From positions 217,620,001 to 217,684,000 of the forward strand of contig CM097883.1 in the NCBI GenBank assembly GCA_044892505.1: DNA of 64,000 bases, written 5' to 3'. The translations under genes were made by a program, and so were the position numbers. The notes beneath the pieces are model-generated. The model saw only the letters and a program-made list of their open reading frames with translations, was not told the DNA's origin and did no database searches. The DNA comes from Schmidtea nova. Its lineage: Eukaryota. Positions 28,057 through 49,874 of this stretch are shown piece by piece (the first letter of the stretch is position 1; every line of letters starts with the position of its first letter).

Positions 28057-28899
28057 TTTCAAACCTTTTTTTAAAAATTTATTTCCTTTTCCTTTTTTAA
28101 CTTTTGATAACAATTACTTTACTTTGTTAAATATTTATTTATTTTTTTAATTTAAATTAAAAGTTTGAAATATCATAACATTGTTTAAATAATCTCTTTT
28201 AATTCTTCTCTTTTCAAAAATGATTGCAACTCAAACTCAAATGCCTAATGGTGAATGTAAATTTGGAGATGAACAATGTGTTCTCTCCTCTCGTGTGGAT
28301 GAGCTTGTTATTTTTGGAGAGTTTTTTTTCTTGATTCACTTTTATTTACTTTTTTTCTTTCCTTTCTTAATTATTTCTTATTTACTACTTCATTTTGTTT
28401 ATAAATTTCTATATTTGACCTGAAAACATCTCAATTAAAAACTCTTTTACCCCTTTTTTGACGTTTTGCTCTGGTGACTAAACACTGTTTAGGTCAATCA
28501 AAAGGCAATTTTAGTCTTTAAAAAAAACATCCAGATAATTATTATCCAGATAATTATTGTACACCTGATAAATTTTAATTAATTTTTGCAATTTTATTTA
28601 TTTTGATATTTCTTTGCTTTTACCCTTCTTTCTTGTTACTTTTGTGATTTTTATACTAACCCCAGCAGAAGGAATTGGGAAAATGTCAGAGCAAATCGAT
28701 CTTACGGAGGACATTGAAATTTATTTTGAAATTCCAAATTTGAACATAAAATGGGCAACGGAAAATTATTTAAAGCCAATTGAAGATAATGTTGAGGTAA
28801 TAGCTGGTAATAAAGGCAGAAGACAAAGGTATGACAACGATGGAAAAAGGACATTAGCTCAGGAAGTTCAGTGCCTCGGATCAAGGAACAATAGTCGCA

Positions 28900-30825
28900 T
28901 TACAGAAAGGATTACAGAGATTAGAAAAGATTATAGAAAGTTTGAGGTCACAGGGAACACGACCTAGAAACAGTGTGACTCGCACAAGAATGGTGGATCT
29001 TAAATGTTACAAATGTAATGAACCAGACCACATAGCCCAATTTTGTAAAAAACAAGAATGGATGAAACCAAAAAAAGAACGAATTTGTTATCAGTGCGGA
29101 AAGAAAGGTCACATTTCAGCTAATTGCCGAAGTAATATGAGCGGTGCAAAAAATGGAACGGAATGTTTCGAGTGTGGTGGAGCACACCAAGCTAGATTTT
29201 GCGATAAAAGAAACAAGTTTAGGTATTTACAAGAAGAATGCGAGGAGGATATAAGAACTGAAATCACAGATACAGTAGTTTCCGAAGAACAGGAAAATAA
29301 CTGTGTCGCAATGACAAAGGATAGCTGGGGCGAGCAAAGAACGGTAAAGATGATAAAAAGTCTTGCAACAAAACCAACATTGGAAGAGAAATATGTTAAC
29401 TTTGTCAATGGGTAAGGTAAAACACCAAAGACGCAATTGAGGAAATACGAACCAACGCTGATTTCTTTTAACAAACCTGAGAAGGCCCGATATAAACCAA
29501 TTACAGAATGTGTGATTATAAATCTACCGGTGAAAGTCGTGTTTGATTCAGGAGCAGATCTGAATGTTATAAGTCAAGAGTTTGCGGAAGATATTGTCAA
29601 AGATAACCCAGCAATAAAAGTTTACAATTCAACAACAAACGTAACATGTGCTAATGGAAGTACAGATTTTTCCCAATACCAGCTGCAGAGGATTAAGTTA
29701 AATATTTCAATCTGACCTATATTAACGAGTCATGTTTTTGATATTATGCCTAATATATTTCCACATATTTTTTTAGGACTTAAAAGCATGAAGATACACG
29801 CAAAATATATTGATGCAGCAAATGAAGGACTTTAATTGCAAAGGATTAAATTCCATCTTTATCTAAGACAATCCCTATTTCTTCTTTAAATGAATGACAA
29901 CCGTATGTGGGGGGTCGGAGTGCGGTTGTGAGGAGAGAGGAGGCTCAGCGAGATTATTATTATAGAGTTATTTTATCGAATAATATAGAAATGAGTAATG
30001 CTGGGATGTTGGTTAATGATCGTAGGGAGAAAATTGATGATTTTAATGAGATTTATATATTTGATGGAGAAAGATCGAGGGTGGCAGATCGTGAAATTGT
30101 GATAAGTGACTACGTAGTATAAGGCAAGAAATGGTATTTATTAGTAAAGAATGCATGTAAGAGGGAGGTTCGAAGACTCTGCATACAGAGACCGGCTTGG
30201 GATATTTAGAAAAAAGGAACGAGTTTTTTAATGAATCAAAGGGCACATTGAATAAACTCACGAAAGATGAAAAAATAAAGGACAAGAAAGCAATAGAGAC
30301 AATATGTTTTTTTAAATAGAGGTTAGCTATCTAAGACATATCATAAATAAGTAAGGTGTTAAAACAAATCCACAGTAAATCAAAAGTTTCAGTTCATGGG
30401 AAATTCCAGCACGTAAAAAGAGTTGCAGTCATTTTTGGGATTTTGCAATTACTACAGACTTTTTATTAAAATGTATGCAGAGACTTTAGAGAAATTGAGT
30501 GCGAAGCTAAAAAATGAAAGATGTTTCCAGTGGAATGAGGACAGAAAAGTAGCGTTCTATGAGCTAAAGCGGTTATTGTCAACCCTACCATTGTTGGAAT
30601 TACCATGCAAGAAAGGACAATAATTTTTTAGACAAAGATGCATCACATAATAGCATTGGGGCTATCTTGTCACAAATGCAAGAAGGCAAGTTAAGAGTAC
30701 TATGTTATGTGTCAAAACTATGAGTAAGTGTCAAAGACGGTATTTCATAACAAGGAAAGAACTACTAGCAATTTATACATAAGTGTTAAGATTCTAGCAT
30801 TATCTCCTCGGATCCAAATTTATAG
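28900..30825 (+). mobile_element. Degenerate Ty3/Gypsy gag-pol (zinc knuckles, protease, RT, RNase H)
   Basis: CYKCNEPDHIAQFC, CYQCGKKGHISANC, CFECGGAHQARFC; VVFDSGADLNVIS; LQSFLGFCNYYRLFI; DASHNSIGAILSQ; truncated at HYLLGSKFIV. Confidence 0.9.
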
Positions 30826-30862
30826 TGTTGGGTGGTATGGGTGTGTTATAAAAATTATTAAC
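30826..30862 (-). mobile_element. Left stub of family-B LTR split by the Polinton
   Basis: Reverse complement (gttaat aatttttataacacacccataccacccaaca) matches 10815-10845. Confidence 0.7.
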
Positions 30863-31360
30863 AGTAAGAGGGTGTGAGCCCCCCAGCACAGGATGAGTTA
30901 TCGCGCACCGCCGATTGAAACAAAATATTCAAACCCCCCGGGGGGAGTGGGGGGGTAATTTTTTTGTTTTAATTTTTGATTTTTGATTTTTCGTTTTTTT
31001 CACGTTTTTGCACAGTGCAAATCGATTTTTTCAAATTTTCTCTACGCAGTATGGTGGTGCACAATGTGCTGCACATTTCTATATCTAAAACTTTTTCATT
31101 GGATGCGCCAAGTAACCGATTATTGATTTTTTCAGTTTTTTTTACATTTTAGCACAGTGAGAATAAAAATTTTTAAGTTTTCTCAACGTTGTTGGGTAGA
31201 TCACAATGAGCTGCACATTTTTTGTTTTGGAAACTTTTTTATAGGATGTGCGGAAGGCACCTAAAAACACGTGTGAGCCCCCCAGCACAGGATGAGTTAT
31301 CGCGCACCGCCGATTAAAACAAAGAAATTTTAACCCCCCCGGTGGGGAGAGGGGGGTAAA
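30863..31360 (+). repeat. Polinton terminal/subterminal repeat: two tandem copies of TGTGAGCCCCCCAGCACAGGATGAGTTATCGCGCACCGCCG plus C/G-rich tract
   Basis: Copies at 30873 and 31272 (about 400 bp apart); CCCCCCGGGGGG palindrome and G-runs; mirrored at 48450-48945; independent copy at 49796-49874. Confidence 0.9.
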
Positions 31361-31439
31361 AATGTTTTTGTTTTAATCGTCGAATATTGATTTTGAAAAT
31401 TTTTTTTGTTTAAATGAGCACAGAAGGAGAAATAATAAA

Positions 31440-32600
31440 GTTAAGAGAAAACTTCCAAGACAAAAGTTGTAGATCATATCGAGGCGCACATTTTAGTTTA
31501 AAAGACCTTTTATTTTTCTTAATCCTATGTTCCAAACTCGTGTTCCAATGTCTCGTTTAAAGAAATATACGACTTCTAAAAAAGATGTGAGAAAACTTCC
31601 AAGACAAAAGTCGTAGACAATGACGAGACACATTTTATATTTGCAAAATACTTTCATTTTGGTCAACCCAATGTATCGAAATCTTGTTCAAAGTTTCGTT
31701 TAAAAATACATGTAAAACTCATATTGACTTTAAAGTGCAAATAAAGTGCAAACAAATAATTACGTATAACTTTTTATTAAAAGGTGCTACTATATATTTT
31801 CAAGTGCCAATATCTTTTAAAAAGTTCTGCACATTATTTTAAAGTGCAACTATTGATTTCTAAGTGCTAAAATGTGCAAGATTGTCATTTTTGTGCAGAA
31901 ATCAGAGTTTTTCAATGGGTTACTCAGTTTTTTAGGAGACTTTTGTTGCATCAACTTATGGGGGCAATGTGCCCGGTTATTCCCGTCACATTTTTTGTCT
32001 AAAAAATTTAATTTTTTCTAGATTTTTCAAGATTTTTCTTCAAAAAAAAATTACCATAAAATTTTTTCATGGAAATGAGTTTACGAGTCGATTATCGATC
32101 TCCATTAAACTCAAATTCCTAGTAAACTACTTGACCAATTTCAAGATGATGCATATCATTAGACTCTAAAACATGTGCCTCATCTTTTGATCAAAAAATA
32201 TTTTGTAAAAATATCAATTATAAATAGTTTGTTTTTTCCCAGTGACAGAAACATTATATCAAAATAATTTTTACATCGTTAGACTCATAATCAAATGAGC
32301 TTTGAGCTGATATAAAAACTTTGCAAAATTCTATTGATTTTTATTTTTTCACACACTACACTTTTAGTTTTTCATAGGTGCTCTAAACTATTTTCGTGAA
32401 TATTATACATCATTAGACTCGTAAATAAATTCTTTACAAGAATCTATATATATTTTTTGTGTAAATATTGATTTTTCAGTTTTGCACATTTTGCACCTTG
32501 ACTTTTTTACAAGTTTTATAAATAATTTTCAACATATTTTTACATCATTCAACTCGTAATCGTCTATTCTACAAAATCATGTCATTACTTTTATGAAACT
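31440..32600 (+). repeat. Degenerate subterminal direct repeats
   Basis: gagaaaacttccaagacaaaagt x2; aagtgc motif cluster 31730-31880; catcattagactc-type unit x4 at 32114-32560. Confidence 0.75.
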
Positions 32601-32719
32601 ATTTATTTTCAAAATTTTCAATTTTCATTTACTAATTTTAATTATTTTCAAAATATTTTTACATCAATGTATTCAACAATTAAATAATTTGTAAACATGT
32701 ATTGAAACAAACACAATAA

Positions 32720-33074
32720 TTAGTCGAAACACATGTGATTATAGAGTTCATTAACTAAAGTATTAATAGTCTGTTTTCGTTTGTATTCAATGCATTCTTG
32801 ACAATTGAAAGGACAAACAAGTGTCTTGAGTATTTTGGCTTGCTTTTTGTATCCATATAACATTAATTTATAATGATATATAATACGTTCGACATTGATT
32901 CCAGTGGCTTGATAGATTTTGGTACTAGCAAGTTCTGGAGCACAATTTAATATTTCATCCTTAATCTCAGGATAAATCTGAGCAATTTTATTAATAAGGA
33001 CTTCAATCTGAAATGCTAGACAAAATTAAAATAATGAAGTAAAATTTTTTACCAATATCTGAAACTTGAGACAT
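32720..33074 (-). CDS. Hypothetical 105-aa protein, two exons (37-nt intron 33016-33052); left-arm copy
   Basis: ATG TCT CAA GTT TCA GAT ATT G|gt..ag|CA TTT CAG... splices in frame to MSQVSDIAFQIEVLINKIAQIYPEIKDEILNCAPE...CPFNCQECIEYKRK...HMCFD*. Confidence 0.7.
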
Positions 33075-33112
33075 TGTAAAAAAAATGAAAAGCGTGAAAT
33101 ATTTCTCTGTAT

Positions 33113-33562
33113 TTATAGTTTTTGGGAACTAATCAAATTCTTTATATCTTGAACAATTTTATTTACCATCCAATCAAAGTTGAGAGTTTTTATACCAAGT
33201 ATAACTATTTTTCCACTGGAAAATAAATTTATACATAATGGTTTATAATTACAAAGTCTTAAAGCAGGAAATATTTCTGGTTCATATATGCAATTCGCTT
33301 TCTTTGATAGATAATGTAAATTAATTTTTTCTCCAATATCCACATTAACTGTACATGATTGAAGACGAACATCTTTAATATCATAGTGTATGCTTTCGAG
33401 GGGTTTCTTGCAACTCATTATCCTACATTTACCAGATTTAAAAAATATAATTGTATATTTTTCATTTTTATCTATAATCTGTTGGAGTTTCAATTTTGGA
33501 AATCTCATGTTTTGTACAACTTTCATTGGAACTTGTCCTCTATAATTAATATTAACCAACAT
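33113..33562 (-). CDS. Divergent TATA-binding protein (TBP)-like, 149 aa; left-arm copy
   Basis: Two TBP repeats: LVNINYR, MRFP, IIFFKSGKCRIMSCK; LQSCTVN, YEPEIFPALRL, NLFSSGKIVILGIK. Confidence 0.85.
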   Translation of the reverse strand: MLVNINYRGQVPMKVVQNMRFPKLKLQQIIDKNEKYTIIFFKSGKCRIMSCKKPLESIHYDIKDVRLQSCTVNVDIGEKINLHYLSKKANCIYEPEIFPALRLCNYKPLCINLFSSGKIVILGIKTLNFDWMVNKIVQDIKNLISSQKL

Positions 33563-33718
33563 TTATGAAACTTGTTATTATTTAATTGATATGTTTAAAC
33601 AAATATTTTATTAATTATGTTGTTGTTATGCTTTTGGTTTCTATATCATTTATTAAAAACTAAAGACAATAAATTAAAGACACATCTTTTAAAAATTATA
33701 ATTATTATAACAATACAA

Positions 33719-34237
33719 CTAATTATTAACTCTACCGCTTAAGATCTTGCAAACAGGTAAGATGGCAGAGCTTGGAGCTATCTTGTAACCTTGAATACGG
33801 ACGACCAAGTTCCATTTATAGTTTTCTTTGAAATGTATCTGAGTATTTCCTTCAAAAAGCTTTGTTGATGGACCACCGATAAATGCACCATCTTCACCTA
33901 ATAATAGTTGTTTGTTTATTCTACTAAATAATGTTCTAATTGCCTCTCGATCTTCTAGCTCAAAATCTTCTATCCAGTAATTGTAGCTAGTCTTCACTAA
34001 GGGAACCGGATTTACTAGAATAAAATCTATTGGATTTTTTAATAAGATCATCTTGAAATCGTGGTAAACATATTCGGGTTTGAAGATTGAAATTTCTTCT
34101 TCCTTCTTCAAGGTTTCTTCATTAAACTTCATCTTTTTCTTCATCGAATGTTCACTTGTTTCCTTCATCATCAGCTGAAATAATGAAAAAATATATTTGG
34201 CAAACACATACTTTCTCAAATACATACACATCTGCAT
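33719..34237 (-). CDS. Hypothetical protein (up to 172 aa); left-arm copy
   Basis: Open frame with globular beta-rich C-terminal half; candidate 37-nt GT-AG intron near the 5' end; no family recognised. Confidence 0.65.
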   Translation of the reverse strand: MQMCMYLRKYVFAKYIFSLFQLMMKETSEHSMKKKMKFNEETLKKEEEISIFKPEYVYHDFKMILLKNPIDFILVNPVPLVKTSYNYWIEDFELEDREAIRTLFSRINKQLLLGEDGAFIGGPSTKLFEGNTQIHFKENYKWNLVVRIQGYKIAPSSAILPVCKILSGRVNN

Positions 34238-34661
34238 TTTGATTTGTCTATTTTATTCTATCAACCATTCACATGCATGTTATGTGATCAGTTATTGATA
34301 TGTTATTGATCAGTTTGTTCCGCCTGACTTTATGTGATTTAATAACTTAGATGATGACTTTAAATTTTGAGTCAATTTCCTAAGAAACAATAATAAATCT
34401 ACATTAAAAAGAATAATAGAATTTAAATTAAAAAATTAAGATAAATAAGAAAATTTATGACAATAAAATCTTAATTTTATGATAATAAAGACTTTTATGT
34501 ATTTTTTAGGAAAATTGAACTTTTTTAGGAATTTTTGATTTGTTTAAAATTGTTAATTCTTTAATTTGAGATCCTTGTAAACTTTTTGAAATTTGATTAA
34601 AAATACAATGATGTTTAAATAATTACTGTCATTGAAAAGATAAGTTAACAATAAAATTGAA

Positions 34662-35675
34662 ATGAATCCAGATTTAATCTCTAAGTACTTTAAAAAGTTT
34701 GTCAGTTATATTCCAACGGTTTTTGAATCATATGATACATCAAGAGTTATCATTTTGCAATTTGCTCTATCTGGTCTCGATTTGTTAAATCGCATTGATG
34801 ATCTCTCGCAATCAGATAAAAATGAAATAGTTGACTGGATTTATGAGCTGCAAATATTAAATTATCAATCTGGCCGTTTAGAGGGATTTCGAGGTGGATT
34901 TTTCCCGAGTAATTGTCATCTCACAAACCAGATTTACATGTCTGGTCATGTAACGATGAATTATTCGTGTTTAGTTTGTTTGATGATTTTGGGTGATAAT
35001 CTTAGTCGAGTCGATAAAACTGGCATTTTAAAATGTTTTAAAAATTTGCAAAATTCTGAAGATGGCTGTTTTTGTGCGGCTCTTGACTGCCCAGAAGCAG
35101 ACGTGAGATTTATATTTTCTGCTTTAGCTTCATGTGCAATTATAAACGATTTCAGCATAGTAGATGTTAATGCTGTTGTGTCGTTTATTTTGAAATGTCA
35201 AGATTATGATGGTGGGTTTGGTCAGAGACCTCGTGAAGAAAGTCACAGTGGCTCCACCTATTGTGCAATAGCAAGTTTAAAGATTCTGTCAAAATTAGAT
35301 GTTTTGTTCCCTGAAAATTCTAGTAAAAGGAATTTAATGCTTCGGTGGTTAATAAATCGTCAGTACGAAGGACTTCATGGAAGACCGCATAAGGACGACG
35401 ATAGTTGTTATACATTTTGGATAGGAGCCTCATTGAAAATGCTTGGCTATGGACATTTAATAAATTTCCCTTCTTTGTTCGATTTCATTGAGTCTACTTA
35501 TGAAAATCTGGCCGGTGGATTTTGTAAATTGAAGAACTTGGGACATTCATTTGGTGATATCTATGAGATCGTTGTGAAAAATGCCGAAACTCTAGACAAT
35601 GCTATTGATTATTCCGGATTTGAAACGTTGAAAAGGTCTTATCCTTTAAGAATTGCTGACAAGGTCGTAGAATGA
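34662..35675 (+). CDS. PGGT1B: Geranylgeranyltransferase type I beta subunit-like, C-terminally replaced by RNR alpha-derived sequence; left-arm copy
   Basis: YDTSRVIILQFALSGLDLL, GHVTMNYSCL..L.ILGDNLSRVD, EADVRFIFSA, CQDYDGGFGQ...ESHSGSTYCAIASL, GRPHKDDDSCYTFWIGASLKMLG, GGFCK; afterwards DIYEIVVKNAETLDNAIDYSGFETLKRSYPLRIADKVVE (RRM1-like). Confidence 0.9.
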   Translation: MNPDLISKYFKKFVSYIPTVFESYDTSRVIILQFALSGLDLLNRIDDLSQSDKNEIVDWIYELQILNYQSGRLEGFRGGFFPSNCHLTNQIYMSGHVTMNYSCLVCLMILGDNLSRVDKTGILKCFKNLQNSEDGCFCAALDCPEADVRFIFSALASCAIINDFSIVDVNAVVSFILKCQDYDGGFGQRPREESHSGSTYCAIASLKILSKLDVLFPENSSKRNLMLRWLINRQYEGLHGRPHKDDDSCYTFWIGASLKMLGYGHLINFPSLFDFIESTYENLAGGFCKLKNLGHSFGDIYEIVVKNAETLDNAIDYSGFETLKRSYPLRIADKVVE

Positions 35676-35891
35676 CCACAACACAGGTTCGTGAGAGCAG
35701 CTGTTGGAATATACAAGGATGATATTGAAAGTGCAATTGAGACTTTTAACTTAATGTCAGAAAAATGGTTCATACACGCTTCACCCATAGTGTTTAATGC
35801 AGAATTGAGATATGGACAACCTTCCAGTTGTTTTCTACTGATAATGAAAGATGACTGCCTTTCTAAATCGAAGCAACAACATGCATGTTAG
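35532..35891 (+). pseudogene. RRM1: Ribonucleotide reductase large subunit fragment; left-arm copy
   Basis: Same frame across one TGA (35673-35675): [46 protein letters not shown]...[12 protein letters not shown]; truncated both sides. Confidence 0.9.
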
Positions 35892-35955
35892 TATATTACA
35901 ACATCCAATCAGTATTATACATAAACATGTGTGTATTTCATAATATTTTGCATTA

Positions 35956-36408
35956 ATGTCTTTTATGGAAGATTATATAGCAACAATTATTCATGAATTG
36001 CTTTTTGGAAGCGAAGATAAAGTAGTTCAATGTTTGAATTGTATGTTACTTGAAGCTGAGTATCATTGTACTATTGATTTCTCTCCAATATTAAAACCAA
36101 GAACAGATATTGAAAAGGAGAAAGCATTCAAAAATGTCTTTGACTCATTATTTGAAGATGGTATCCGTTGGTCTAAAGTTATTACAATTTTTTTGTACAT
36201 TCGAAAAATTCTTATTTTATGTCCAACTGAACATCAGAAATATTTGAAATGGTCAGTACAAGAAATTCTCAAAATTTATCCATGGATCAAAGAAAACGGA
36301 GACTGGGAATATGTTATTAAATTACAATTAAAATATGGTTTTAATTTGATTATTAAATGTTTAAGTATTTGTATTATATATTTAATAAAATTTTATCAAC
36401 TTTATTAA
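35956..36408 (+). CDS. Bcl-2 family protein, 150 aa; left-arm copy
   Basis: BH1-like FKNVFDSLFEDGIRWSKVITIFLY, BH2-like PWIKENGDWEYV, hydrophobic C-terminal tail. Confidence 0.82.
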   Translation: MSFMEDYIATIIHELLFGSEDKVVQCLNCMLLEAEYHCTIDFSPILKPRTDIEKEKAFKNVFDSLFEDGIRWSKVITIFLYIRKILILCPTEHQKYLKWSVQEILKIYPWIKENGDWEYVIKLQLKYGFNLIIKCLSICIIYLIKFYQLY

Positions 36409-36411
36409 TAA

Positions 36412-36885
36412 TTTTTAAACACAAAACATTTATTTAACAATTTACCAAACTTTATTCTTGTAATATTTCAATCGGAAGCTCAATATAATAGTTCATATGC
36501 AGAAACGAGTTCAAAATTTAACCATTTTAGTATAACTTCAATAACTTTGTCGAAACACTCTGATTATCGTGAAACATATACGCAAGATTTTGACAAAGAT
36601 AATTATGCTGTAACTTATATGCAATCTATTGTACGAAATATGGGTTATTTAGACAAGAATTTAAATTGTGGAATAGATCTTGTAGACTTTAAAAGTAAAT
36701 ACCCCTTCTTTACATTTGTGTTGGCTCCCAACTGTGATTGGAATCAATCACAGTTACCTCAAAATGGAAATTTAAGACTTGATATTAAATTCAACAAGGC
36801 TCTTACATCTCCTGCATATGTAATAATTTATGGTGTTTTTGAGAGTGAAATCCAGATCTCCTCAAATCGAACTATTTTAGTGTAA
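36412..36885 (+). pseudogene. 3' part of Polinton major capsid protein (double jelly-roll), 5'-truncated at the duplication junction
   Basis: LFNNLPNFILVIFQSEAQYNSSY...KFNHFSI...YPFFTFVLAP...QNGNLRLDIKFNKALTSPAYVIIYGVFESEIQISSNRTILV; no start codon. Confidence 0.8.
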
Positions 36886-36916: not shown

Positions 36917-37302
36917 ATGGAGTAAGTTCGTTTTGTTACTATTAATTTTACTAATGTAGTTCTATTCAGCTTAATAGAATTGCAACAAATTTATTTGAAT
37001 ATAATTTTTTGGGAGTTTATCCATTAGATAAAATTCCTTTTCTAAACGATAACAAAGCCATCATTGTCAATACACAATCATCAAGTCTTGAAGGAGAACA
37101 TTGGCTAGCCATCTATATGACCAGAGGAAAGATTCATGTGTTTGACCCTATGGGTTATTATTATCCATCATTCTTGGTATCGAAGCTCTCAAAATTATCA
37201 AAACCAATTGTTTACAACAGAAATAGATATCAAGATCTATTTACAATTATTTGCGGACAATATTGTATTGTTTGGTTATATTATATGTTTAATAAATGTT
37301 AA
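36917..37302 (+). CDS. Adenain-like cysteine protease (Polinton PRO), join(36917..36921,36960..37302), 115 aa
   Basis: ATG GA|gtaagt...taatgtag|T TCT gives MDSIQLNRIATNLFEYNFLGVYPLDKIP...GEHWLA...FDPMG...QDLFTIICGQYC (His, Asp, Gln, Cys catalytic set). Confidence 0.9.
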
Positions 37303-37425: not shown

Positions 37426-40400
37426 TTATTCCGATAAATATTGGTCTGAATCGCTTGATACAAAACTTGGGGAATGCTCCGTTGATGATTGTTGTTGTTG
37501 TTGGTCAGGAAAGTCACTTTTAGTATTAATATTATTATTTATAACACTTTCCTCAGAAATTACTACAGAATAATGCCCATAAGCTAGACTCTTGTTCCTC
37601 CCCACCCAAACCCTTTTATCATCGTTGTTAGTTAATGCGACTTTATTTGTTTTAAATGTTAACAGCTGATGATTTTTAGTACCGATTCTAATTTGTGGGA
37701 CTTTTGGAATTATCATTCCATTATAACAGTCCAAATATGACTGATGATTTATTATAGTCTGTCCCAACCGAATACCTTTTGCTTTTAACGTTTGTTTCTT
37801 TGGACCTCCCAAGAGACTATATAACTTTGGACGAAGGAAAACCCATTCTTTATATTTGATTCCTTTACTTTCGTCCTTAAATTTTCCCACAACTGATGCC
37901 AAATCTCTATTGAATAATGGATGGGAGGAATCATAGTTTGAAGTGTCCAAGAGTTTGTCCTTTATCATTTCTCTTAATAAAACTTCCAGGTTTAAATTCT
38001 TTACCTCCAAAAAGAATGAGTCAGTGTCTCCAGCTACAATATTAATTTCACAATTGAATTGTTCCCTATACTTTCGCAAATCATTATATTGCAGTTGGTA
38101 CATTCTTAGTTTGGATAAATCCAAGACTGTTTGACCAATATATGTTGGTCTATCCAAACATACAATTTCCTGATTCAACAGAGCAGCTATTAGGTTGTCA
38201 GCAATTTTGAAGCTTTTCTTGAACCCAGGTATAGATGCATATGTCACCATTTTCTTCTGGGTATTACATAGACGTAAATTTATTCGTTTCTTCAAATTTT
38301 CCACCGTTTTGCCATAGAAGCTATTGTTGATTAGCTTATAATAATCTTTATCTAATTCTGTCAAGGAAGCAGCTCGTAATTTTGTATTGTTGTCGATATA
38401 ATTTTTAAATATTTGTCCTTGTTTGAATTTAATTGCTCTATGAACCTTTGTTACTTGAACACCCAACATCAGGAAAAACTTCAACAATCTCCAATGAATC
38501 ACATAATTCTTCTTTGAATAATGTGTTAATAAAAGTTTAGGAACCTTTGATTCAGAGGGGCACATTTTCTCAGCTGATGCAGGCAAATCATCTATTAAAT
38601 CGTGAATCTCATCAGGAATTTCCAAATCCACCTCCATTGTAAATCCGTAATTGAGTTTTTCCAGCTCCAATGTTTGACAATCTTCCAAGACTTTATCTAG
38701 ATTGTCATGAACCCATTTGAATTCTCCGCATGGCAGACTTTGACAGAGTGCCCAACCATATAGATTATTTATGTCTATATAAAGCAAATCAGTATTTTCA
38801 TCAGTTTTCACATGATGTTTGTTGACAAATGTAAGTCCCCCTCTAATTCCACCTTCATAATAATTGTACATTTCATAATCTGTCAACAATTCAATAGGAC
38901 TATCCAGTGTTAAAAGTCCAGAAGCCCAAGACATTCCCGGTATTCCAAAGAAATTCAAAGGTTCCAAACCATTATGTGCTAATGATTTGGCTCGAAATTG
39001 TTCAAAATAGTCTGCCAATAGATATACGTCTAACTTCATGTATATCATCATGTAATCCAACAATGTCTCGCAGCTATTCTCTCTCCATATATTCTTGGCT
39101 TTTTCATATTCGTCTTCAGTCACTCCAGTCCATATTGGAGGCAATTCAAAAGTTTCTTGAAGTATTTCCAAACTCTTTGCGAAGTCAAATGGAAATATAC
39201 CCTTTGAGTCTACAATTGATGCTTGGAATACCGAATTTGTTATGGGTAAGCTTATCAAAGTCTTCACTGCTCCAGCTAAAGATTCATTTATAAACTGGTA
39301 TGAATCTATGAATTTTATTGTCATTTTCTTGTAATGAGCGATAAGTGTGAGAAATTTCTCACATGTTGTAGGAATACAACTTATGCTCCAATTACGAAAT
39401 TTATTTATTCCGTATTTTAAAATATGATGCATATCATAACCCTTGAGGTTATGAAATACAACTGGTAGGGTTCTTCTAATTCTTCGTGAGAGATTGCATC
39501 TATTGCAAGCTGCTCCTAAGTACTTTCCACTAAAATGGTTGTGATCTCGAACCAAATTATTAGGGGTTTTGTGACATATGTAACAGGAAGTTGCTCTATT
39601 AAATGAAATCTGTTGATCACGATTAATCACCATTAATGTATTACTATGTTCCACGTAATATTGTAATACTTTAGTCTGTGAAATTTCCTCCACTTTCTTA
39701 AGAAAATCAAAGACACAGTCATGTCCAATAAATTGATGATATTCTTTACTTCCTGAATAGTTATTTACCAATAAAAGTCCAGCTGAAATTGGTAAATGTT
39801 TTTGGTAGTGTTGCTCATCCTCTGGTAAGACTGATTCAAAATCCGCATAGATGACATATGGCGGTAATCAATTTTGACCAATCTATATTTGTTTGTAGGA
39901 GTTATGTATAATGTGGTTCCTATTTGATTTTTTTACATAGATCTACATGTCTGTCAAATGCTAATGGTCTTCGAAAACCGTTAAGACAATTAGGGCACCA
40001 TTTGCATTGAATTCTCGTCGGACAATCTTCGTTTTCATGAAAATTCATCAGCCTATTTAGATTTGGAACAGCTGTGTAGTGATAATTTCCATTTTCTTCC
40101 AACAAAAGCAAATATATTGGGTTAATATCTTTTACTTTTGTTTTATGAATAATATCTAGATGTGGATGTTTCATAAGCACATCATCTTCCACCGAGAAAT
40201 TATCTGCCTCGTACGATAATACGTTAATAGCTATCCCGGGATTTTGGGCTTCAAATTTCCGAATATCTTTCAGTTTTGTAGGCACTTTTTCCCTATCGAA
40301 CCTTAGTTCTGATAAGTATTGTGTATATTGTGACGGTCTATTTCTGTTGCTGTTTATTACATCATATTTTAATAATGATAAAACACTATAAATAAAACAT

Positions 40401-41569
40401 AGGTTATCATTATTCCTTACATTGATCAGTTTGCCTTTGAGATTTATTGGAGTATTAATAAATCTATGTCCTGGCAATCTACTTATCTCTGCATACTTTG
40501 TTACTTTAAAGTTGATTTCCAATATACGGTTCAAATGCCAACTACTTCCCATCGTAGTTCTTATTGTTATTTTTTCATTTAGGGATTGTATACCCTCCTC
40601 CAGAAAGTTTGGTGACATCTCCACAGCACGATTTGAGAGTCTTGCAGTCCTGATCTCTCCATCTTTAACGAATTCTGCGTTTATACCAAATTGTACCTTA
40701 CCTTTTTTCAATTCGGATAGACAAACTTTTAGTTTTGTTTTTAAAGAAACAGGAATAATTATTTCTTGTACATTATAACCTGAAATGTCCAAGGAAATAA
40801 TTTGATGTGATCTATATAAGTCACATTCAATTTCGGGTTCCTTATCTATTCCTGTTCCAGTTTGAATAAATGTTTCATCCATTAAAGAGTAGCTATCTGC
40901 ATACTCTGTAGATTCACTTTCGGTATAAAAATCTGTTATCTCATCCACTAATTCAAAATTTAGCCAATCTTCTAGAATTGGTTCCTCTTGATTTCCAACA
41001 TTTTCTTCTTCTTCTTCTTCTTCTTGTCCATCTTGTCCATCTTCTGCTTCGGAATCTGTGATTAAAATACAATCTTCTCCTCGGTTTCCTGAATTGTCCA
41101 TTTCTTGAATCACCTCTTCAGAATCTTCTTCTTCTTCGGAATCGATGATTAAAATATAATCTTGTTGTTGTTGTTGGTGAATTTCTTCTCCTTGGTGTCC
41201 CATATCCTCCATTTCTTGAATCGCCTCTTCAGAATGTTGTTTGGAATTGGCAACATCATTTGTTTCTTGAATCGATACTTCTTCTTGTTGTTGTTGTTGT
41301 CATTGTTGTTGATTTGTTTCTTCACAAACGTTGATCTGATCCAAATCAACGTTGACATTATTTTCTAAACGCCGACATATTTTATTATTATTATATATAA
41401 TAATTGGAGCTTTTCTTTTAAAAAGCTTCTTTTTACTTTCATTAAATAGGGTTAAGTGTCGCATATGATTTTTATAAAAGGTAAGGTATGGGTCGGAACT
41501 TAGAGTCTGGCAAAATGGACATATATAGTATATTTCCTGGAAATATGTTATTTTATAATAAAGTTCCAT
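37426..41569 (-). pseudogene. polB: Protein-primed family B DNA polymerase (pPolB) with endonuclease VII-like insert, disrupted
   Basis: YADFES, RDHNHFSGKYLGAACNRCNL, VFHNLKGYD, FIDSY, KGIFP, GIRGG, YIDINNLYGWAL, KLINNSFYGK, GDTDS, GKFKDE, LRPKLYS; ORFs 41300-41569 and 39920-41212 are in frame across one TGA; frameshifts between 39920 and 39867. Confidence 0.95.
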
Positions 41570-42103
41570 TATTTGGTGACAGTTGGAACTGTGTATTGCA
41601 TTGTTATAATACCTCGGATATAATAAACCTTAATGTTATTTTAAAATTAATTTAATTTATATTCTAAATATTTATATATATTTTTTTATGAGAGAACATT
41701 AGTAATATAAACTTCCTAGAAAAAAAAATAATAGTTATTTTGTGTATCTATTAAAAGTTTTTAATCTAAAGATTACTGTAATAATTACTTAAAATAACTA
41801 TTATTTTGGATCTATTTTTCATATTTATATGAATATATAATTCCTTGTTGTTAGTGTACATAAATGAATAAAAATTTTATGAATTTACATAGGTATTCAC
41901 GTTGTTAGTATACATAGCAATAAAAATTTATTTATAATTTTTTTTAAATTAGCAATTTTATTTTTGTTAAAAACAATATTTTCCATACTTGTATGATTTT
42001 AATGTTTAAAAAAAAATAAAACAATAATTTTTTTTAAAATTTGATATTCTAATTAATAATATAATATTTTAAAATAATTTTTGTGTCAAAAAACAATAAT
42101 TTT

Positions 42104-42545
42104 TGTTGTTAGTGTTCCTAACAACAAATTTTATACATTAAATATTAATAATTCCCATAATGTTAAGACTATAGATCAAATTATCTTTAAATAAGTACAC
42201 AATATTTCGGCCCAGCTTTTATCATAGATGAAACAAAAGATTATTATGACATTAAAATTATAAAAATAATTTTTTATATATTACTAAAGGTGAATAAATT
42301 TGTTGTTAGGTACTATTGTTGTTAGTGTTCCTAACAACTAATTTTATACATTAAATATTAATAATTTCCCATAATGTTAAGACTAGATCAAATTATTTTT
42401 AAATAAGTACACAATATTTTGACATAGCCTTTATCATGGGTGAAACAAAAGATTATAATGACATTAAATATTATAAAAATAATTTTTAAAAATTACTGAA
42501 GATGAATAAATTTTGTTGTTAGTGTCCCTAACAACAAATTTTATT
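42104..42545 (-). repeat. About 200-bp tandem repeat (2 units plus start of a third) containing Penelope-type pseudo-LTR with degenerate hammerhead core
   Basis: ttgttgttagtgt(t/c)cctaacaac hairpin at 42104, 42317, 42514; each unit carries ataattcccataatgttaagactatagatc...gtacacaatattt. Confidence 0.8.
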
Positions 42546-43123
42546 CAACTATTATTAAATTAAAAATAATATAAAAATAATTTACTATTTTAGATGATTA
42601 TATTTTGTTAACTTCACTATCAACACTGATAGTTAACTTCAACAAAATACAATCATCTAAAATCTGAAATCTTAAATAAAAAAAAATTTACATTTATCCT
42701 TTGAATTAAAATTTCAAGCATTCTGAAATTTTTAAAAAAAAAGTAATAAAAACTTATATTTGGTTAATATATTAATATTACCATTTGTTTCGTAGTATTA
42801 TCTTTTGAATTGACTTGCTTCTTTTGTCTCTGCATCATTTCTGTAAAGAATAATTATAAAAAATGAAATAAAAATATAAAATAAACCTTACTTCTTTGAA
42901 TAAATTTCTTATTATAAATTTAAATAGATTTTTAAAATTAAATTTAAATAGTGAATTAAAACAAACAGTTTATAATTAGTTATCGTTAATAGGCAACTAA
43001 ACAATTATTGTTATTAAGCAACTAGAATATTCTAGAATATTCTAGAATGAATTTATGTAACTAAGATTTCATAAACAACTATAAACGATAACTCATTGTC
43101 GATAATTATTATTTATATAGATC

Positions 43124-43341
43124 ATGGATGATATAGATGGTAACCTTTGAATATTTGAAACAAAATTTATTATAAAGATTTGTTTTTAGAAATTATATAC
43201 AAAGAGGAACAAATAGAACCTGAAGAAAGTATAATTGATGATTCTAATGATATATTTGAGTTATCAAGTCAAGAACCAATTATAATTTTGCCGAGTAAAA
43301 ATACGGAAACTTTGTTCCAAGATATTAAGAATTTAAAGTAG
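43124..43341 (+). CDS. Small acidic 55-aa protein, join(43124..43139,43190..43341)
   Basis: ATG GAT GAT ATA GAT G|gtaacc...ttttag|AA ATT (50-nt intron) gives MDDIDEIIYKEEQIEPEESIIDDSNDIFELSSQEPIIILPSKNTETLFQDIKNLK*. Confidence 0.55.
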
Positions 43342-43400
43342 AAAACTGCATGTTTTTGTCAAGATTATTTGTTAAATAAATGTTTTGTGTTTAAAAATTA

Positions 43401-43853
43401 TTAATAAAGTTGATAAAATTTTATTAAATATATAATACAAATACTTAAACATTTAATAATCAAATTAAAACCATATTTTAATTGTAATTTAATAACATAT
43501 TCCCAGTCTCCGTTTTCTTTGATCCATGGATAAATTTTGAGAATTTCTTGTACTGACCATTTCAAATATTTCTGATGTTCAGTTGGACATAAAATAAGAA
43601 TTTTTCGAATGTACAAAAAAATTGTAATAACTTTAGACCAACGGATACCATCTTCAAATAATGAGTCAAAGACATTTTTGAATGCTTTCTCCTTTTCAAT
43701 ATCTGTTCTTGGTTTTAATATTGGAGAGAAATCAATAGTACAATGATACTCAGCTTCAAGTAACATACAATTCAAACATTGAACTACTTTATCTTCGCTT
43801 CCAAAAAGCAATTCATGAATAATTGTTGCTATATAATCTTCCATAAAAGACAT
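43401..43853 (-). CDS. Bcl-2 family protein; right-arm copy
   Basis: Identical translation to 35956-36408. Confidence 0.82.
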   Translation of the reverse strand: MSFMEDYIATIIHELLFGSEDKVVQCLNCMLLEAEYHCTIDFSPILKPRTDIEKEKAFKNVFDSLFEDGIRWSKVITIFLYIRKILILCPTEHQKYLKWSVQEILKIYPWIKENGDWEYVIKLQLKYGFNLIIKCLSICIIYLIKFYQLY

Positions 43854-43917
43854 TAATGCAAAATATTATGAAATACACACATGTTTATGTATAATACTGA
43901 TTGGATGTTGTAATATA

Positions 43918-44277
43918 CTAACATGCATGTTGTTGCTTCGATTTAGAAAGGCAGTCATCTTTCATTATCAGTAGAAAACAACTGGAAGGTTGTCCATATC
44001 TCAATTCTGCATTAAACACTATGGGTGAAGCGTGTATGAACCATTTTTCTGACATTAAGTTAAAAGTCTCAATTGCACTTTCAATATCATCCTTGTATAT
44101 TCCAACAGCTGCTCTCACGAACCTGTGTTGTGGTCATTCTACGACCTTGTCAGCAATTCTTAAAGGATAAGACCTTTTCAACGTTTCAAATCCGGAATAA
44201 TCAATAGCATTGTCTAGAGTTTCGGCATTTTTCACAACGATCTCATAGATATCACCAAATGAATGTCCCAAGTTCTT
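43918..44277 (-). pseudogene. RRM1: RNR large subunit fragment; right-arm copy
   Basis: Mirror of 35532-35891. Confidence 0.9.
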
Positions 44278-45147
44278 CAATTTACAAAATCCACCGGCCA
44301 GATTTTCATAAGTAGACTCAATGAAATCGAACAAAGAAGGGAAATTTAATAAATGTCCATAGCCAAGCATTTTCAATGAGGCTCCTATCCAAAATGTATA
44401 ACAACTATCGTCGTCCTTATGCGGTCTTCCATGAAGTCCTTCGTACTGACGATTTATTAACCACCGAAGCATTAAATTCCTTTTACTAGAATTTTCAGGG
44501 AACAAAACATCTAATTTTGACAGAATCTTTAAACTTGCTATTGCACAATAGGTGGAGCCACTGTGACTTTCTTCACGAGGTCTCTGACCAAACCCACCAT
44601 CATAATCTTGACATTTCAAAATAAACGACACAACAGCATTAACATCTACTATGCTGAAATCGTTTATAATTGCACATGAAGCTAAAGCAGAAAATATAAA
44701 TCTCACGTCTGCTTCTGGGCAGTCAAGAGCCGCACAAAAACAGCCATCTTCAGAATTTTGCAAATTTTTAAAACATTTTAAAATGCCAGTTTTATCGACT
44801 CGACTAAGATTATCACCCAAAATCATCAAACAAACTAAACACGAATAATTCATCGTTACATGACCAGACATGTAAATCTGGTTTGTGAGATGACAATTAC
44901 TCGGGAAAAATCCACCTCGAAATCCCTCTAAACGGCCAGATTGATAATTTAATATTTGCAGCTCATAAATCCAGTCAACTATTTCATTTTTATCTGATTG
45001 CGAGAGATCATCAATGCGATTTAACAAATCGAGACCAGATAGAGCAAATTGCAAAATGATAACTCTTGATGTATCATATGATTCAAAAACCGTTGGAATA
45101 TAACTGACAAACTTTTTAAAGTACTTAGAGATTAAATCTGGATTCAT
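44134..45147 (-). CDS. PGGT1B: GGTase-I beta/RNR chimera; right-arm copy
   Basis: Mirror of 34662-35675 with one I/L difference. Confidence 0.9.
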   Translation of the reverse strand: MNPDLISKYFKKFVSYIPTVFESYDTSRVIILQFALSGLDLLNRIDDLSQSDKNEIVDWIYELQILNYQSGRLEGFRGGFFPSNCHLTNQIYMSGHVTMNYSCLVCLMILGDNLSRVDKTGILKCFKNLQNSEDGCFCAALDCPEADVRFIFSALASCAIINDFSIVDVNAVVSFILKCQDYDGGFGQRPREESHSGSTYCAIASLKILSKLDVLFPENSSKRNLMLRWLINRQYEGLHGRPHKDDDSCYTFWIGASLKMLGYGHLLNFPSLFDFIESTYENLAGGFCKLKNLGHSFGDIYEIVVKNAETLDNAIDYSGFETLKRSYPLRIADKVVE

Positions 45148-45571
45148 TTCAATTTTATTGTTAACTTATCTTTTCAATGACAGTAATTATTTAAACATCA
45201 TTGTATTTTTAATCAAATTTCAAAAAGTTTACAAGGATCTCAAATTAAAGAATTAACAATTTTAAACAAATCAAAAATTCCTAAAAAAGTTCAATTTTCC
45301 TAAAAAATACATAAAAGTCTTTATTATCATAAAATTAAGATTTTATTGTCATAAATTTTCTTATTTATCTTAATTTTTTAATTTAAATTCTATTATTCTT
45401 TTTAATGTAGATTTATTATTGTTTCTTAGGAAATTGACTCAAAATTTAAAGTCATCATCTAAGTTATTAAATCACATAAAGTCAGGCGGAACAAACTGAT
45501 CAATAACATATCAATAACTGATCACATAACATGCATGTGAATGGTTGATAGAATAAAATAGACAAATCAAA

Positions 45572-46090
45572 ATGCAGATGTGTATGTATTTGAGAAAGTA
45601 TGTGTTTGCCAAATATATTTTTTCATTATTTCAGCTGATGATGAAGGAAACAAGTGAACATTCGATGAAGAAAAAGATGAAGTTTAATGAAGAAACCTTG
45701 AAGAAGGAAGAAGAAATTTCAATCTTCAAACCCGAATATGTTTACCACGATTTCAAGATGATCTTATTAAAAAATCCAATAGATTTTATTCTAGTAAATC
45801 CGGTTCCCTTAGTGAAGACTAGCTACAATTACTGGATAGAAGATTTTGAGCTAGAAGATCGAGAGGCAATTAGAACATTATTTAGTAGAATAAACAAACA
45901 ACTATTATTAGGTGAAGATGGTGCATTTATCGGTGGTCCATCAACAAAGCTTTTTGAAGGAAATACTCAGATACATTTCAAAGAAAACTATAAATGGAAC
46001 TTGGTCGTCCGTATTCAAGGTTACAAGATAGCTCCAAGCTCTGCCATCTTACCTGTTTGCAAGATCTTAAGCGGTAGAGTTAATAATTAG
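45572..46090 (+). CDS. Hypothetical protein; right-arm copy
   Basis: Mirror of 33719-34237; candidate intron 45598-45634. Confidence 0.65.
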   Translation: MQMCMYLRKYVFAKYIFSLFQLMMKETSEHSMKKKMKFNEETLKKEEEISIFKPEYVYHDFKMILLKNPIDFILVNPVPLVKTSYNYWIEDFELEDREAIRTLFSRINKQLLLGEDGAFIGGPSTKLFEGNTQIHFKENYKWNLVVRIQGYKIAPSSAILPVCKILSGRVNN

Positions 46091-46246
46091 TTGTATTGTT
46101 ATAATAATTATAATTTTTAAAAGATGTGTCTTTAATTTATTGTCTTTAGTTTTTAATAAATGATATAGAAACCAAAAGCATAACAACAACATAATTAATA
46201 AAATATTTGTTTAAACATATCAATTAAATAATAACAAGTTTCATAA

Positions 46247-46696
46247 ATGTTGGTTAATATTAATTATAGAGGACAAGTTCCAATGAAAGTTGTACAAAAC
46301 ATGAGATTTCCAAAATTGAAACTCCAACAGATTATAGATAAAAATGAAAAATATACAATTATATTTTTTAAATCTGGTAAATGTAGGATAATGAGTTGCA
46401 AGAAACCCCTCGAAAGCATACACTATGATATTAAAGATGTTCGTCTTCAATCATGTACAGTTAATGTGGATATTGGAGAAAAAATTAATTTACATTATCT
46501 ATCAAAGAAAGCGAATTGCATATATGAACCAGAAATATTTCCTGCTTTAAGACTTTGTAATTATAAACCATTATGTATAAATTTATTTTCCAGTGGAAAA
46601 ATAGTTATACTTGGTATAAAAACTCTCAACTTTGATTGGATGGTAAATAAAATTGTTCAAGATATAAAGAATTTGATTAGTTCCCAAAAACTATAA
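46247..46696 (+). CDS. Divergent TBP-like protein; right-arm copy
   Basis: Mirror of 33113-33562. Confidence 0.85.
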   Translation: MLVNINYRGQVPMKVVQNMRFPKLKLQQIIDKNEKYTIIFFKSGKCRIMSCKKPLESIHYDIKDVRLQSCTVNVDIGEKINLHYLSKKANCIYEPEIFPALRLCNYKPLCINLFSSGKIVILGIKTLNFDWMVNKIVQDIKNLISSQKL

Positions 46697-46734
46697 ATAC
46701 AGAGAAATATTTCACGCTTTTCATTTTTTTTACA

Positions 46735-47089
46735 ATGTCTCAAGTTTCAGATATTGGTAAAAAATTTTACTTCATTATTTTAATTTTGTCTAGCATTTCA
46801 GATTGAAGTCCTTATTAATAAAATTGCTCAGATTTATCCTGAGATTAAGGATGAAATATTAAATTGTGCTCCAGAACTTGCTAGTACCAAAATCTATCAA
46901 GCCACTGGAATCAATGTCGAACGTATTATATATCATTATAAATTAATGTTATATGGATACAAAAAGCAAGCCAAAATACTCAAGACACTTGTTTGTCCTT
47001 TCAATTGTCAAGAATGCATTGAATACAAACGAAAACAGACTATTAATACTTTAGTTAATGAACTCTATAATCACATGTGTTTCGACTAA
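46735..47089 (+). CDS. Hypothetical 105-aa spliced protein; right-arm copy, join(46735..46756,46794..47089)
   Basis: 37-nt GT-AG intron; 318 nt coding, in frame. Confidence 0.7.
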
Positions 47090-49795
47090 TTATTGTGTTT
47101 GTTTCAATACATGTTTACAAATTATTTAATTGTTGAATACATTGATGTAAAAATATTTTGAAAATAATTAAAATTAGTAAATGAAAATTGAAAATTTTGA
47201 AAATAAATAGTTTCATAAAAGTAATGACATGATTTTGTAGAATAGACGATTACGAGTTGAATGATGTAAAAATATGTTGAAAATTATTTATAAAACTTGT
47301 AAAAAAGTCAAGGTGCAAAATGTGCAAAACTGAAAAATCAATATTTACACAAAAAATATATATAGATTCTTGTAAAGAATTTATTTACGAGTCTAATGAT
47401 GTATAATATTCACGAAAATAGTTTAGAGCACCTATGAAAAACTAAAAGTGTAGTGTGTGAAAAAATAAAAATCAATAGAATTTTGCAAAGTTTTTATATC
47501 AGCTCAAAGCTCATTTGATTATGAGTCTAACGATGTAAAAATTATTTTGATATAATGTTTCTGTCACTGGGAAAAAACAAACTATTTATAATTGATATTT
47601 TTACAAAATATTTTTTGATCAAAAGATGAGGCACATGTTTTAGAGTCTAATGATATGCATCATCTTGAAATTGGTCAAGTAGTTTACTAGGAATTTGAGT
47701 TTAATGGAGATCGATAATCGACTCGTAAACTCATTTCCATGAAAAAATTTTATGGTAATTTTTTTTTGAAGAAAAATCTTGAAAAATCTAGAAAAAATTA
47801 AATTTTTTAGACAAAAAATGTGACGGGAATAACCGGGCACATTGCCCCCATAAGTTGATGCAACAAAAGTCTCCTAAAAAACTGAGTAACCCATTGAAAA
47901 ACTCTGATTTCTGCACAAAAATGACAATCTTGCACATTTTAGCACTTAGAAATCAATAGTTGCACTTTAAAATAATGTGCAGAACTTTTTAAAACATATT
48001 GGCACTTGAAAATATATAGTAGCACCTTTTAATAAAAAGTTATACGTAATTATTTGTTTGCACTTTATTTGCACTTTAAAGTCAATATGAGTTTTACATG
48101 TATTTTTAAACGAAACTTTGAACAAGATTTCGATACATTGGGTTGACCAAAATGAAAGTATTTTGCAAATATAAAATGTGTCTCGTCATTGTCTACGACT
48201 TTTGTCTTGGAAGTTTTCTCACATCTTTTTTAGAAGTCGTATATTTCTTTAAACGAGACATTGGAACACGAGTTTGGAACATAGGATTAAGAAAAATAAA
48301 AGGTCTTTTAAACTAAAATGTGCGCCTCGATATGATCTACAACTTTTGTCTTGGAAGTTTTCTCTTAACTTTATTATTTCTCCTTCTGTGCTCATTTAAA
48401 CAAAAAAAATTTTCAAAATCAATATTCGACGATTAAAACAAAAACATTTTTACCCCCCTCTCCCCACCGGGGGGGTTAAAATTTCTTTGTTTTAATCGGC
48501 GGTGCGCGATAACTCATCCTGTGCTGGGGGGCTCACACGTGTTTTTAGGTGCCTTCCGCACATCCTATAAAAAAGTTTCCAAAACAAAAAATGTGCAGCT
48601 CATTGTGATCTACCCAACAACGTTGAGAAAACTTAAAAATTTTTATTCTCACTGTGCTAAAATGTAAAAAAAACTGAAAAAATCAATAATCGGTTACTTG
48701 GCGCATCCAATGAAAAAGTTTTAGATATAGAAATGTGCAGCACATTGTGCACCACCATACTGCGTAGAGAAAATTTGAAAAAATCGATTTGCACTGTGCA
48801 AAAACGTGAAAAAAACGAAAAATCAAAAATCAAAAATTAAAACAAAAAAATTACCCCCCACTCCCCCCGGGGGGTTTGAATATTTTGTTTCAATCGGCGG
48901 TGCGCGATAACTCATCCTGTGCTGGGGGGCTCACACCCTCTTACTGTTAATAATTTTTATAACACACCCATACCACCCAACACTATAAATTTGGATCCGA
49001 GGAGATAATGCTAGAATCTTAACACTTATGTATAAATTGCTAGTAGTTCTTTCCTTGTTATGAAATACCGTCTTTGACACTTACTCATAGTTTTGACACA
49101 TAACATAGTACTCTTAACTTGCCTTCTTGCATTTGTGACAAGATAGCCCCAATGCTATTATGTGATGCATCTTTGTCTAAAAAATTATTGTCCTTTCTTG
49201 CATGGTAATTCCAACAATGGTAGGGTTGACAATAACCGCTTTAGCTCATAGAACGCTACTTTTCTGTCCTCATTCCACTGGAAACATCTTTCATTTTTTA
49301 GCTTCGCACTCAATTTCTCTAAAGTCTCTGCATACATTTTAATAAAAAGTCTGTAGTAATTGCAAAATCCCAAAAATGACTGCAACTCTTTTTACGTGCT
49401 GGAATTTCCCATGAACTGAAACTTTTGATTTACTGTGGATTTATTTTAACACCTTACTTATTTATGATATGTCTTAGATAGCTAACCTCTATTTAAAAAA
49501 ACATATTGTCTCTATTGCTTTCTTGTCCTTTATTTTTTCATCTTTCGTGAGTTTATTCAATGTGCCCTTTGATTCATTAAAAAACTCGTTCCTTTTTTCT
49601 AAATATCCCAAGCCGGTCTCTGTATGCAGAGTCTTCGAACCTCCCTCTTACATGCATTCTTTACTAATAAATACCATTTCTTGCCTTATACTACGTAGTC
49701 ACTTATCACAATTTCACGATCTGCCACCCTCGATCTTTCTCCATCAAATATATAAATCTCATTAAAATCATCAATTTTCTCCCTACGATCATTAA

Positions 49796-49874
49796 CCGGG
49801 GGGTTTGAATATTTTGTTTTAATCGGCGGTACGCGATAACTCATCCTGTGCTGGGGGGCTCACATCCCCCTACT
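49796..49874 (-). repeat. True right terminal inverted repeat of the Polinton (last 79 bp)
   Basis: Differs from left TIR at several positions (e.g. ggcggtacgcg vs ggcggtgcgcg), ends in TACT followed by TSD. Confidence 0.85.

Follow-up and report, generated by a model that had tools for sequence, protein, structure and literature searches.

A geranylgeranyltransferase-I beta frame fused to a ribonucleotide reductase remnant in Schmidtea nova: a probable deletion scar in an apparent virus-like relic

The fused reading frame and its two parts

The stretch of DNA analysed here, called the window throughout, comprises 64,000 nucleotides from the AT-rich animal genome of Schmidtea nova (assembly GCA_044892505.1, contig CM097883.1, positions 217,620,001 to 217,684,000) and has a GC content of about 31%. 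An intronless open reading frame (ORF) opens at position 34662 of the window on the plus strand. It begins with sequence of the beta subunit of protein geranylgeranyltransferase type I (GGTase-I) and continues in frame into sequence of the large subunit of ribonucleotide reductase (RNR), up to position 35891. The fused ORF lies within a compact run of intronless virus-style genes, consisting of a TBP-like ORF, an ORF of 172 codons (orf172), the fused ORF itself and a Bcl-2-like ORF, next to the polymerase and protease frames of what appears to be a Maverick/Polinton-type element.

The GGTase-I beta-like part occupies positions 34662..35558 (+) and holds about 299 of the approximately 367 residues of a full-length relative, P0001. 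It was assigned by Pfam and Protein Data Bank (PDB) searches, comparison with P0001, two alignments (A1 and A2), an AlphaFold2 model and a Foldseek search. The Pfam family of the prenyltransferase alpha-alpha toroid, PF00432, matches ORF residues 6-291 with an E value of 6.9e-79 (model positions 6-269 of 304). A sequence search against the PDB returned GGTase-I beta (8rdx_B and 1n4p_B) as the top matches at E 6e-66, with weaker matches to the beta subunits of Rab geranylgeranyltransferase (1.5e-38) and farnesyltransferase (3.5e-19). Judged by these sequence scores, the toroid domain of the ORF is nearer to GGTase-I beta than to either of the other two. The alignment with P0001 is colinear over 300 columns at 77% identity, with one single-residue gap, and homology stops at 35558. 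Because of this colinearity, the GGTase part is free of introns, stops and frameshifts.

In cellular GGTase-I beta, zinc is bound by an aspartate, a cysteine and a C-terminal histidine, and the alpha subunit is common to farnesyltransferase and GGTase-I. In the ORF, D247 and C249 line up with the aspartate and cysteine ligands of the rat GGTase-I beta protein, and neither varies across the 17-sequence alignment A2. The C-terminal histidine motif common to the full-length relatives has no counterpart in the aligned ORF, leaving the zinc-ligand set incomplete. The toroid is incomplete as well: about 35 of the 304 PF00432 model positions are absent and the alpha-alpha barrel lacks its final section, whereas P0001 matches positions 6-303. 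Lacking the third zinc ligand as well as the segment that closes the barrel, the predicted product cannot be an active prenyltransferase. A tblastn search with P0001, at E values up to 10, found the missing GGTase C terminus in no frame of the window; it has therefore been deleted, and is neither frame-shifted nor spliced away. A frameshift and a downstream exon, both considered as causes of the missing C terminus, were ruled out by this search of all window frames. The Pfam scan covered all window frames of at least 90 codons free of assembly gaps, together with many shorter frames in the element. It found no PPTA-repeat ORF (alpha subunit) among these open frames, and a heterodimer with the shared alpha subunit is hypothetical.

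An AlphaFold2 model based on a 17-sequence alignment had a mean predicted local distance difference test (pLDDT) score of 80 and a predicted template modelling (pTM) score of 0.81. Residues 1-294 were modelled confidently, mostly at pLDDT 75-97. The RNR-derived tail reached only pLDDT 30-37 and is therefore not predicted to close the barrel. A Foldseek search of the PDB with the model gave rat GGTase-I beta (1n4p_B) as the top match with a template modelling (TM) score of 0.79; identity to the rat protein in the fold alignment is 37%. Foldseek found no prenyltransferase-beta-like viral protein in BFVD, a library of predicted structures of viral proteins, where the best matches were glycosidase-type toroids with E values of at least 2.6e-3 and TM scores of at most 0.45.

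The second part of the ORF, at 35559..35891 (+) and in the same frame as the first, is a remnant of a eukaryote-type class Ia RNR large-subunit gene according to PDB matches to RRM1 and Rnr1 and the Pfam family Ribonuc_red_lgN. It retains about 110 of some 800 codons (approximately 14% of the gene) and is cut at both ends. Its first piece is colinear with residues 121-165 of yeast Rnr1 and weak when taken alone (E 0.17). The second piece corresponds to residues 172-228 of human RRM1 (PDB search, E 2.9e-19) and also matches yeast Rnr1 (1e-14). Ribonuc_red_lgN was matched at positions 27-75 of 77 with an E value of 3.2e-11. The remnant is damaged by a single in-frame stop and, relative to yeast Rnr1, lacks one short internal segment. 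It includes neither the ATP cone nor the catalytic ten-stranded barrel, and no further RNR domain was found in any frame scanned.

An earlier note, made from the DNA letters alone, had described a PGGT1B-like first half joined in frame to an RRM1-like second half, an absence of introns, retention of the zinc-binding aspartate and cysteine, and loss of the C-terminal histidine region. The searches and alignments given above bear out each of these points, and the sequence scores for both halves are far beyond chance. That the junction is in frame is unremarkable, as the prior chance is 1 in 3. Both lesions, the stop and the deletion, affect RNR sequence, and the GGTase part has none; this distribution is not significant (approximately 0.27 if counted as one event, 0.07 if counted as two). 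The note had also suggested capture through mRNA. Such capture would agree with the lack of introns; the gene has lost its 3' end, and neither a poly(A) trace nor a target-site duplication was seen around the fused ORF.

Among 5.8 billion clusters, only two close relatives of the GGTase part were found. P0001 is a full-length protein of 367 residues from a Logan contig of 1189 nt. P0002 (UniParc UPI000605E308), which seems to be a gene model produced by genome annotation, shares about 91% identity with the window protein over approximately 208 common columns and carries a 52-residue in-frame insert. The residue at which it departs from the family consensus is also the one at which the window ORF does so; beyond it, P0002 runs into unrelated sequence. 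This coincidence could reflect an exon boundary read through by the gene predictor, or a truncation shared by both proteins with different sequence downstream. Neither the 74-residue tail of P0002 nor its insert has a match in the window. A likeness of the tail to RNR, suspected by eye, was dropped because no tool supports it. With P0001 as the outgroup, 8 changes are unique to the window copy and 9 to P0002 (p 0.81), giving no acceleration of rate, and of 36 columns invariant in P0003-P0016 none is changed in the window copy. No decay is evident in the rate and invariant-column counts, whose statistical power is too low to demonstrate constraint. Of the named GGTase matches, the best by BLASTP is from the flatworm Macrostomum lignano at 46% identity.

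The surrounding element and its inverted duplication

Beyond what the earlier note described, the analysis identified the virus-style gene cluster, its Maverick/Polinton context and an inverted second copy. The assignment to a Maverick/Polinton-type element was made because a polymerase adjoins an adenain-like protease. The polymerase, a protein-primed DNA polymerase of family B (pPolB) that includes an endonuclease-VII-like module, is located at 37426..41569 (-) and was recognised from its relatives, by tblastn and by the Pfam family Endonuclease_7. It has 710 relatives, mostly of 1100-1300 residues and up to 63% identical, in ENA and JGI metagenome assemblies, and many of them carry PF03175 and PF02945. 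The pPolB pieces had no match in the PDB sequence search, and the identity was obtained from the search for relatives. Almost the full length of relatives of 1190-1256 residues is covered, and tblastn with five relatives returned two to three pieces in two frames. On these alignments the pPolB reading frame is broken at least once, probably twice. The protease frame, at 36955..37299 (+), matches the adenain-like cysteine protease family PF00770 (E 4e-05, 23.8 bits against a cutoff of 21.3) and has 115 codons compared with a model of 179 positions.

No rve integrase was matched in the gap-free open frames of at least 90 codons, nor in the shorter element frames scanned. The same frames gave no Pfam match to a packaging ATPase or a jelly-roll capsid protein, and Pfam may lack models for these capsid proteins. 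With neither an integrase nor a packaging ATPase nor a capsid domain detected in the scanned frames, the element is considered a relic. Thus, judging from its predicted genes, the cluster together with pPolB and the protease is what remains of a Maverick/Polinton (adintovirus-like) element. No common motif could be discerned by eye upstream of the element genes, and GC content, overall and at third codon positions, did not tell cargo, core and host genes apart.

The TBP-like ORF, with 149 codons, is located at 33113..33562 (-) and has a mirror copy at 46247-46696 (+); Pfam TBP is matched with an E value of 2.7e-15. Among solved structures, archaeal TBPs (3e-14) outscore the eukaryotic ones (1e-9 to 1e-7) with this ORF. 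Divergent from the fused ORF is orf172 at 33719..34237 (-), mirrored at 45572-46090 (+), with 172 codons and no family match. The Bcl-2-like ORF of 150 codons lies at 35956..36408 (+), with its mirror at 43401-43853 (-), and is supported by Pfam Bcl-2 (E 1.4e-07, 32.4 bits against a cutoff of 31.4) and by PDB 6v4m_A (1e-06). An open frame of 157 codons at 36412..36882 (+) likewise has no family match. It lies directly upstream of the protease, a place where capsid genes might be expected.

The block at 30011-36440 recurs in inverted orientation at 43369-49797. The repeat measures 6430 nt and its arms are 99.94% identical, differing by three substitutions and one indel. In the left arm (30011..36440), the outer 3 kb or so consists of non-coding DNA that includes a retroelement fragment and repeats with units of about 120-135 bp, and the inner 3.3 kb is the four-gene cluster; the 157-codon frame starts in this arm and crosses its inner boundary. 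The right arm (43369..49797) contains the second copy of the fused ORF, with the GGTase-I beta-like part at 44251..45147 (-) and the RNR remnant at 43918..44250 (-). The sole arm-to-arm difference within the fused ORF alters one amino acid of the GGTase part, and the RNR remnants are identical. The arms are separated by 6928 nt, and this spacer holds the protease and polymerase frames together with a 19% GC stretch that includes a host-type repeat.

A degraded long terminal repeat (LTR) retroelement remnant with a gag zinc knuckle, an aspartyl protease and a reverse transcriptase (RT)-RNase H connection, at 28858..30720 (+), spans the outer boundary of the left arm. The edge itself falls between the gag/protease portion (28858-29712) and the RT-RNase H fragment (30417-30720), both on one strand. 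The right arm stops abruptly at unrelated repeats. The flanks of the two arms share no target-site duplication, and no shorter inverted repeats were found around the element core genes. Because its outer edge sits within a retroelement, the repeat is not a clean viral terminus. The findings fit a segmental inverted duplication within the host genome better than a clean viral terminal repeat. A multi-gene inverted duplication of this sort could pass for the terminal repeat of a virus, and the locus illustrates the case well.

The units of about 120-135 bp in the non-coding outer arms are 75-85% alike and are located at 30849-31704 and, in mirror position, at 48105-48959; an extra unit lies outside the right arm at 49796-49888. 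Within the spacer, positions 41570-43368 are the non-coding stretch of 19% GC. It includes a 212-bp sequence present as two tandem copies (42103-42522), with related repeats at about 2.8, 4.0 and 13.2 kb of the window.

Elsewhere in the window, an uninterrupted ORF of 1170 codons with a DUF4550 domain, probably a host gene, is located at 16199-19711 (-). Its two matches are the Logan protein P0143 (54% identity) and, as the best named one, a protein of the hemichordate Saccoglossus kowalevskii (25%). Further mobile-element fragments lie at 21724-22008, 24632-25478 and 60405-61190 and comprise part of a CENP-B_N/HTH_Tnp_1 transposase, several RT-RNase H pieces and an ORF with DUF7047 and RVT_3. 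Positions 52000-56000 show a strong AT skew of -0.38 to -0.44, the plus strand having more T than A, with no tandem repeats and no family match in the open frames. No tRNA genes were found in the window.

Origin of the fused frame

The fused ORF is probably a scar left by recent deletion within a decaying element rather than a novel viral tool, and its product most likely has no function. This origin is favoured because a full-length relative, P0001, exists and because the surrounding element is decayed, as seen in the interrupted pPolB, the short protease, the core genes that were not found and the host-type repeat in the centre. In the proposed course of events, intronless animal-type genes for GGTase-I beta and the RNR large subunit would have been cargo of a Maverick/Polinton-type element fixed in an AT-rich animal genome. 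Deletions would then have taken the GGTase gene's 3' end and, with it, the 5' end of the RNR gene; the RNR gene past approximately codon 230 would also have been deleted. The outcome would be 299 GGTase codons followed by about 110 RNR codons, in frame by chance. Later, the block with the TBP-like ORF, orf172, the Bcl-2-like ORF and a piece of the adjacent retroelement would have been copied in inverted orientation. The data show what both parts are and where they lie, what was lost, the duplication and the core genes of the element; the former adjacency of the two genes, the order of these events and the lack of function we infer.

Three observations weigh against a deletion scar. The GGTase part is pristine, with no stop or frameshift in 299 codons, all 36 invariant columns kept and no acceleration; this fits a very young scar, and equally continued constraint. 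In addition, P0002 leaves the family at the same residue, and if this reflects a shared truncation, the truncated form has outlived a protein divergence of about 10%. Finally, the adjacency of two full-length genes, on which the proposed deletion depends, is itself inferred.

The earlier note had offered a deletion and a decoy as its two explanations. As a catalytically dead decoy, the product would bind the shared alpha subunit and lower the prenylation of Rho/Ras-type proteins to the benefit of the element. The lack of decay in the GGTase part, fully open with its 36 family-invariant columns kept, and the coincidence with P0002 keep this explanation alive. Moreover, residues 1-294 are confidently modelled as a prenyltransferase-beta toroid (TM 0.79 to 1n4p_B), and neighbours such as the Bcl-2-like ORF are of a host-manipulation type. 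However, approximately 35 of the 304 toroid positions and the histidine ligand are absent, leaving the barrel incomplete, and the tail is unstructured in the model (pLDDT below 50). The lone difference between the two copies of the ORF is an amino-acid change, the element core genes are broken or not found, the rate and invariant-column counts are powerless to show constraint, and the tail of P0002 is not RNR-like by any tool. A decoy is thus considered unlikely. The deletion half of the earlier proposal agrees with the full-length P0001 and the decayed element, whereas the decoy half fits poorly with the incomplete barrel and the tail modelled at low confidence.

A different origin would make the junction original. 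Host messages for GGTase-I beta and RRM1 could have been joined by template switching in the course of reverse transcription and inserted as one intronless piece, forming a chimeric retrocopy. Both halves are indeed intronless and of animal type, a retroelement lies less than 4 kb away, and the junction is the point at which P0002 leaves the family, possibly an exon boundary. Yet the poly(A) trace and target-site duplication looked for around the ORF were not seen, the RNR piece comes from the interior of its gene and is further damaged, and a compact cluster beside pPolB and a protease resembles a viral gene array and not scattered retrocopies. A chimeric retrocopy is therefore doubtful, to about the same degree as a decoy.

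A broader and more speculative possibility, regarded as distinctly improbable, is that a Maverick/adintovirus-like lineage carries a working gene derived from GGTase-I beta, represented by the full-length P0001, and that the truncated form found here, possibly together with P0002, acts as a sponge for the alpha subunit. If so, a protein-prenyltransferase subunit would for the first time be known from a virus-like element, and the lipidation of host Rho/Ras proteins would be tuned in a new way. A mis-assembly that created the junction or the inverted duplication is very improbable: the arms are 99.94% identical over 6.4 kb and four assembly gaps occur elsewhere in the window, but an uninterrupted open frame runs across the junction in both arms, the arms differ at four positions with 6.9 kb of unique sequence between them, and no assembly gap is closer than 20 kb to the ORF.

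If the fused ORF is a deletion scar, it is ordinary in itself and shows a gene caught in decay within an endogenised virus-like element. The interest would then lie in the cargo set beside pPolB and the protease, comprising GGTase-I beta, the RNR large subunit, a TBP-like and a Bcl-2-like protein. Literature searches found no viral prenyltransferase-beta-like protein. Because these searches and that of BFVD gave no such viral protein, the locus hints that elements of this kind sample host lipid-modification genes.

Comparison with known systems

The ORF resembles cellular GGTase-I beta (PGGT1B; 1n4p_B from rat, and 8rdx_B) in its toroid domain, its aspartate and cysteine ligands and its predicted fold. 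Unlike the cellular protein, it is encoded without introns, ends shortly before the C-terminal histidine motif and runs into foreign sequence. Its identity to named animal GGTase-I beta orthologues is about 50% or less. The second part is colinear with residues 121-228 of the eukaryotic class Ia RNR large subunit (RRM1 3hnc_A, Rnr1 1zyz_A), in the all-alpha N-terminal domain. In contrast to that protein, the remnant amounts to approximately 14% of the length, and the ATP cone and catalytic barrel are not included.

Betaherpesviruses encode inactive homologues of the RNR large subunit R1 that are full-length, conserved across virus species and expressed. A decoy derived from GGTase-I beta would resemble these by analogy, as a host-derived subunit that lost catalysis and was kept for binding. 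The betaherpesvirus R1 homologues are full-length, however, whereas the ORF described here is truncated.

The element is similar to animal Mavericks/Polintons and adintoviruses in having pPolB and an adenain-like protease. It differs from them in that no integrase, ATPase or capsid genes were found and in that its 6.4-kb inverted repeat holds four genes and retroelement sequence. Bcl2 homologues have been reported in animal adintoviruses (PMC8502044), and nematode Mavericks contain cargo regions of 2-5 kb taken from their hosts (bioRxiv 10.1101/2022.07.12.499685). Neither PMC8502044, in which the word 'ribonucleotide' occurs 0 times, nor bioRxiv 10.1101/2022.07.12.499685 mentions GGTase-beta, RNR or TBP-like cargo. 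Thus, as far as its predicted genes tell, the locus is an endogenous Maverick/adintovirus-like relic with host-derived cargo, which is a known kind of element, and its cargo of GGTase-I beta, RNR and TBP-like genes is unusual.

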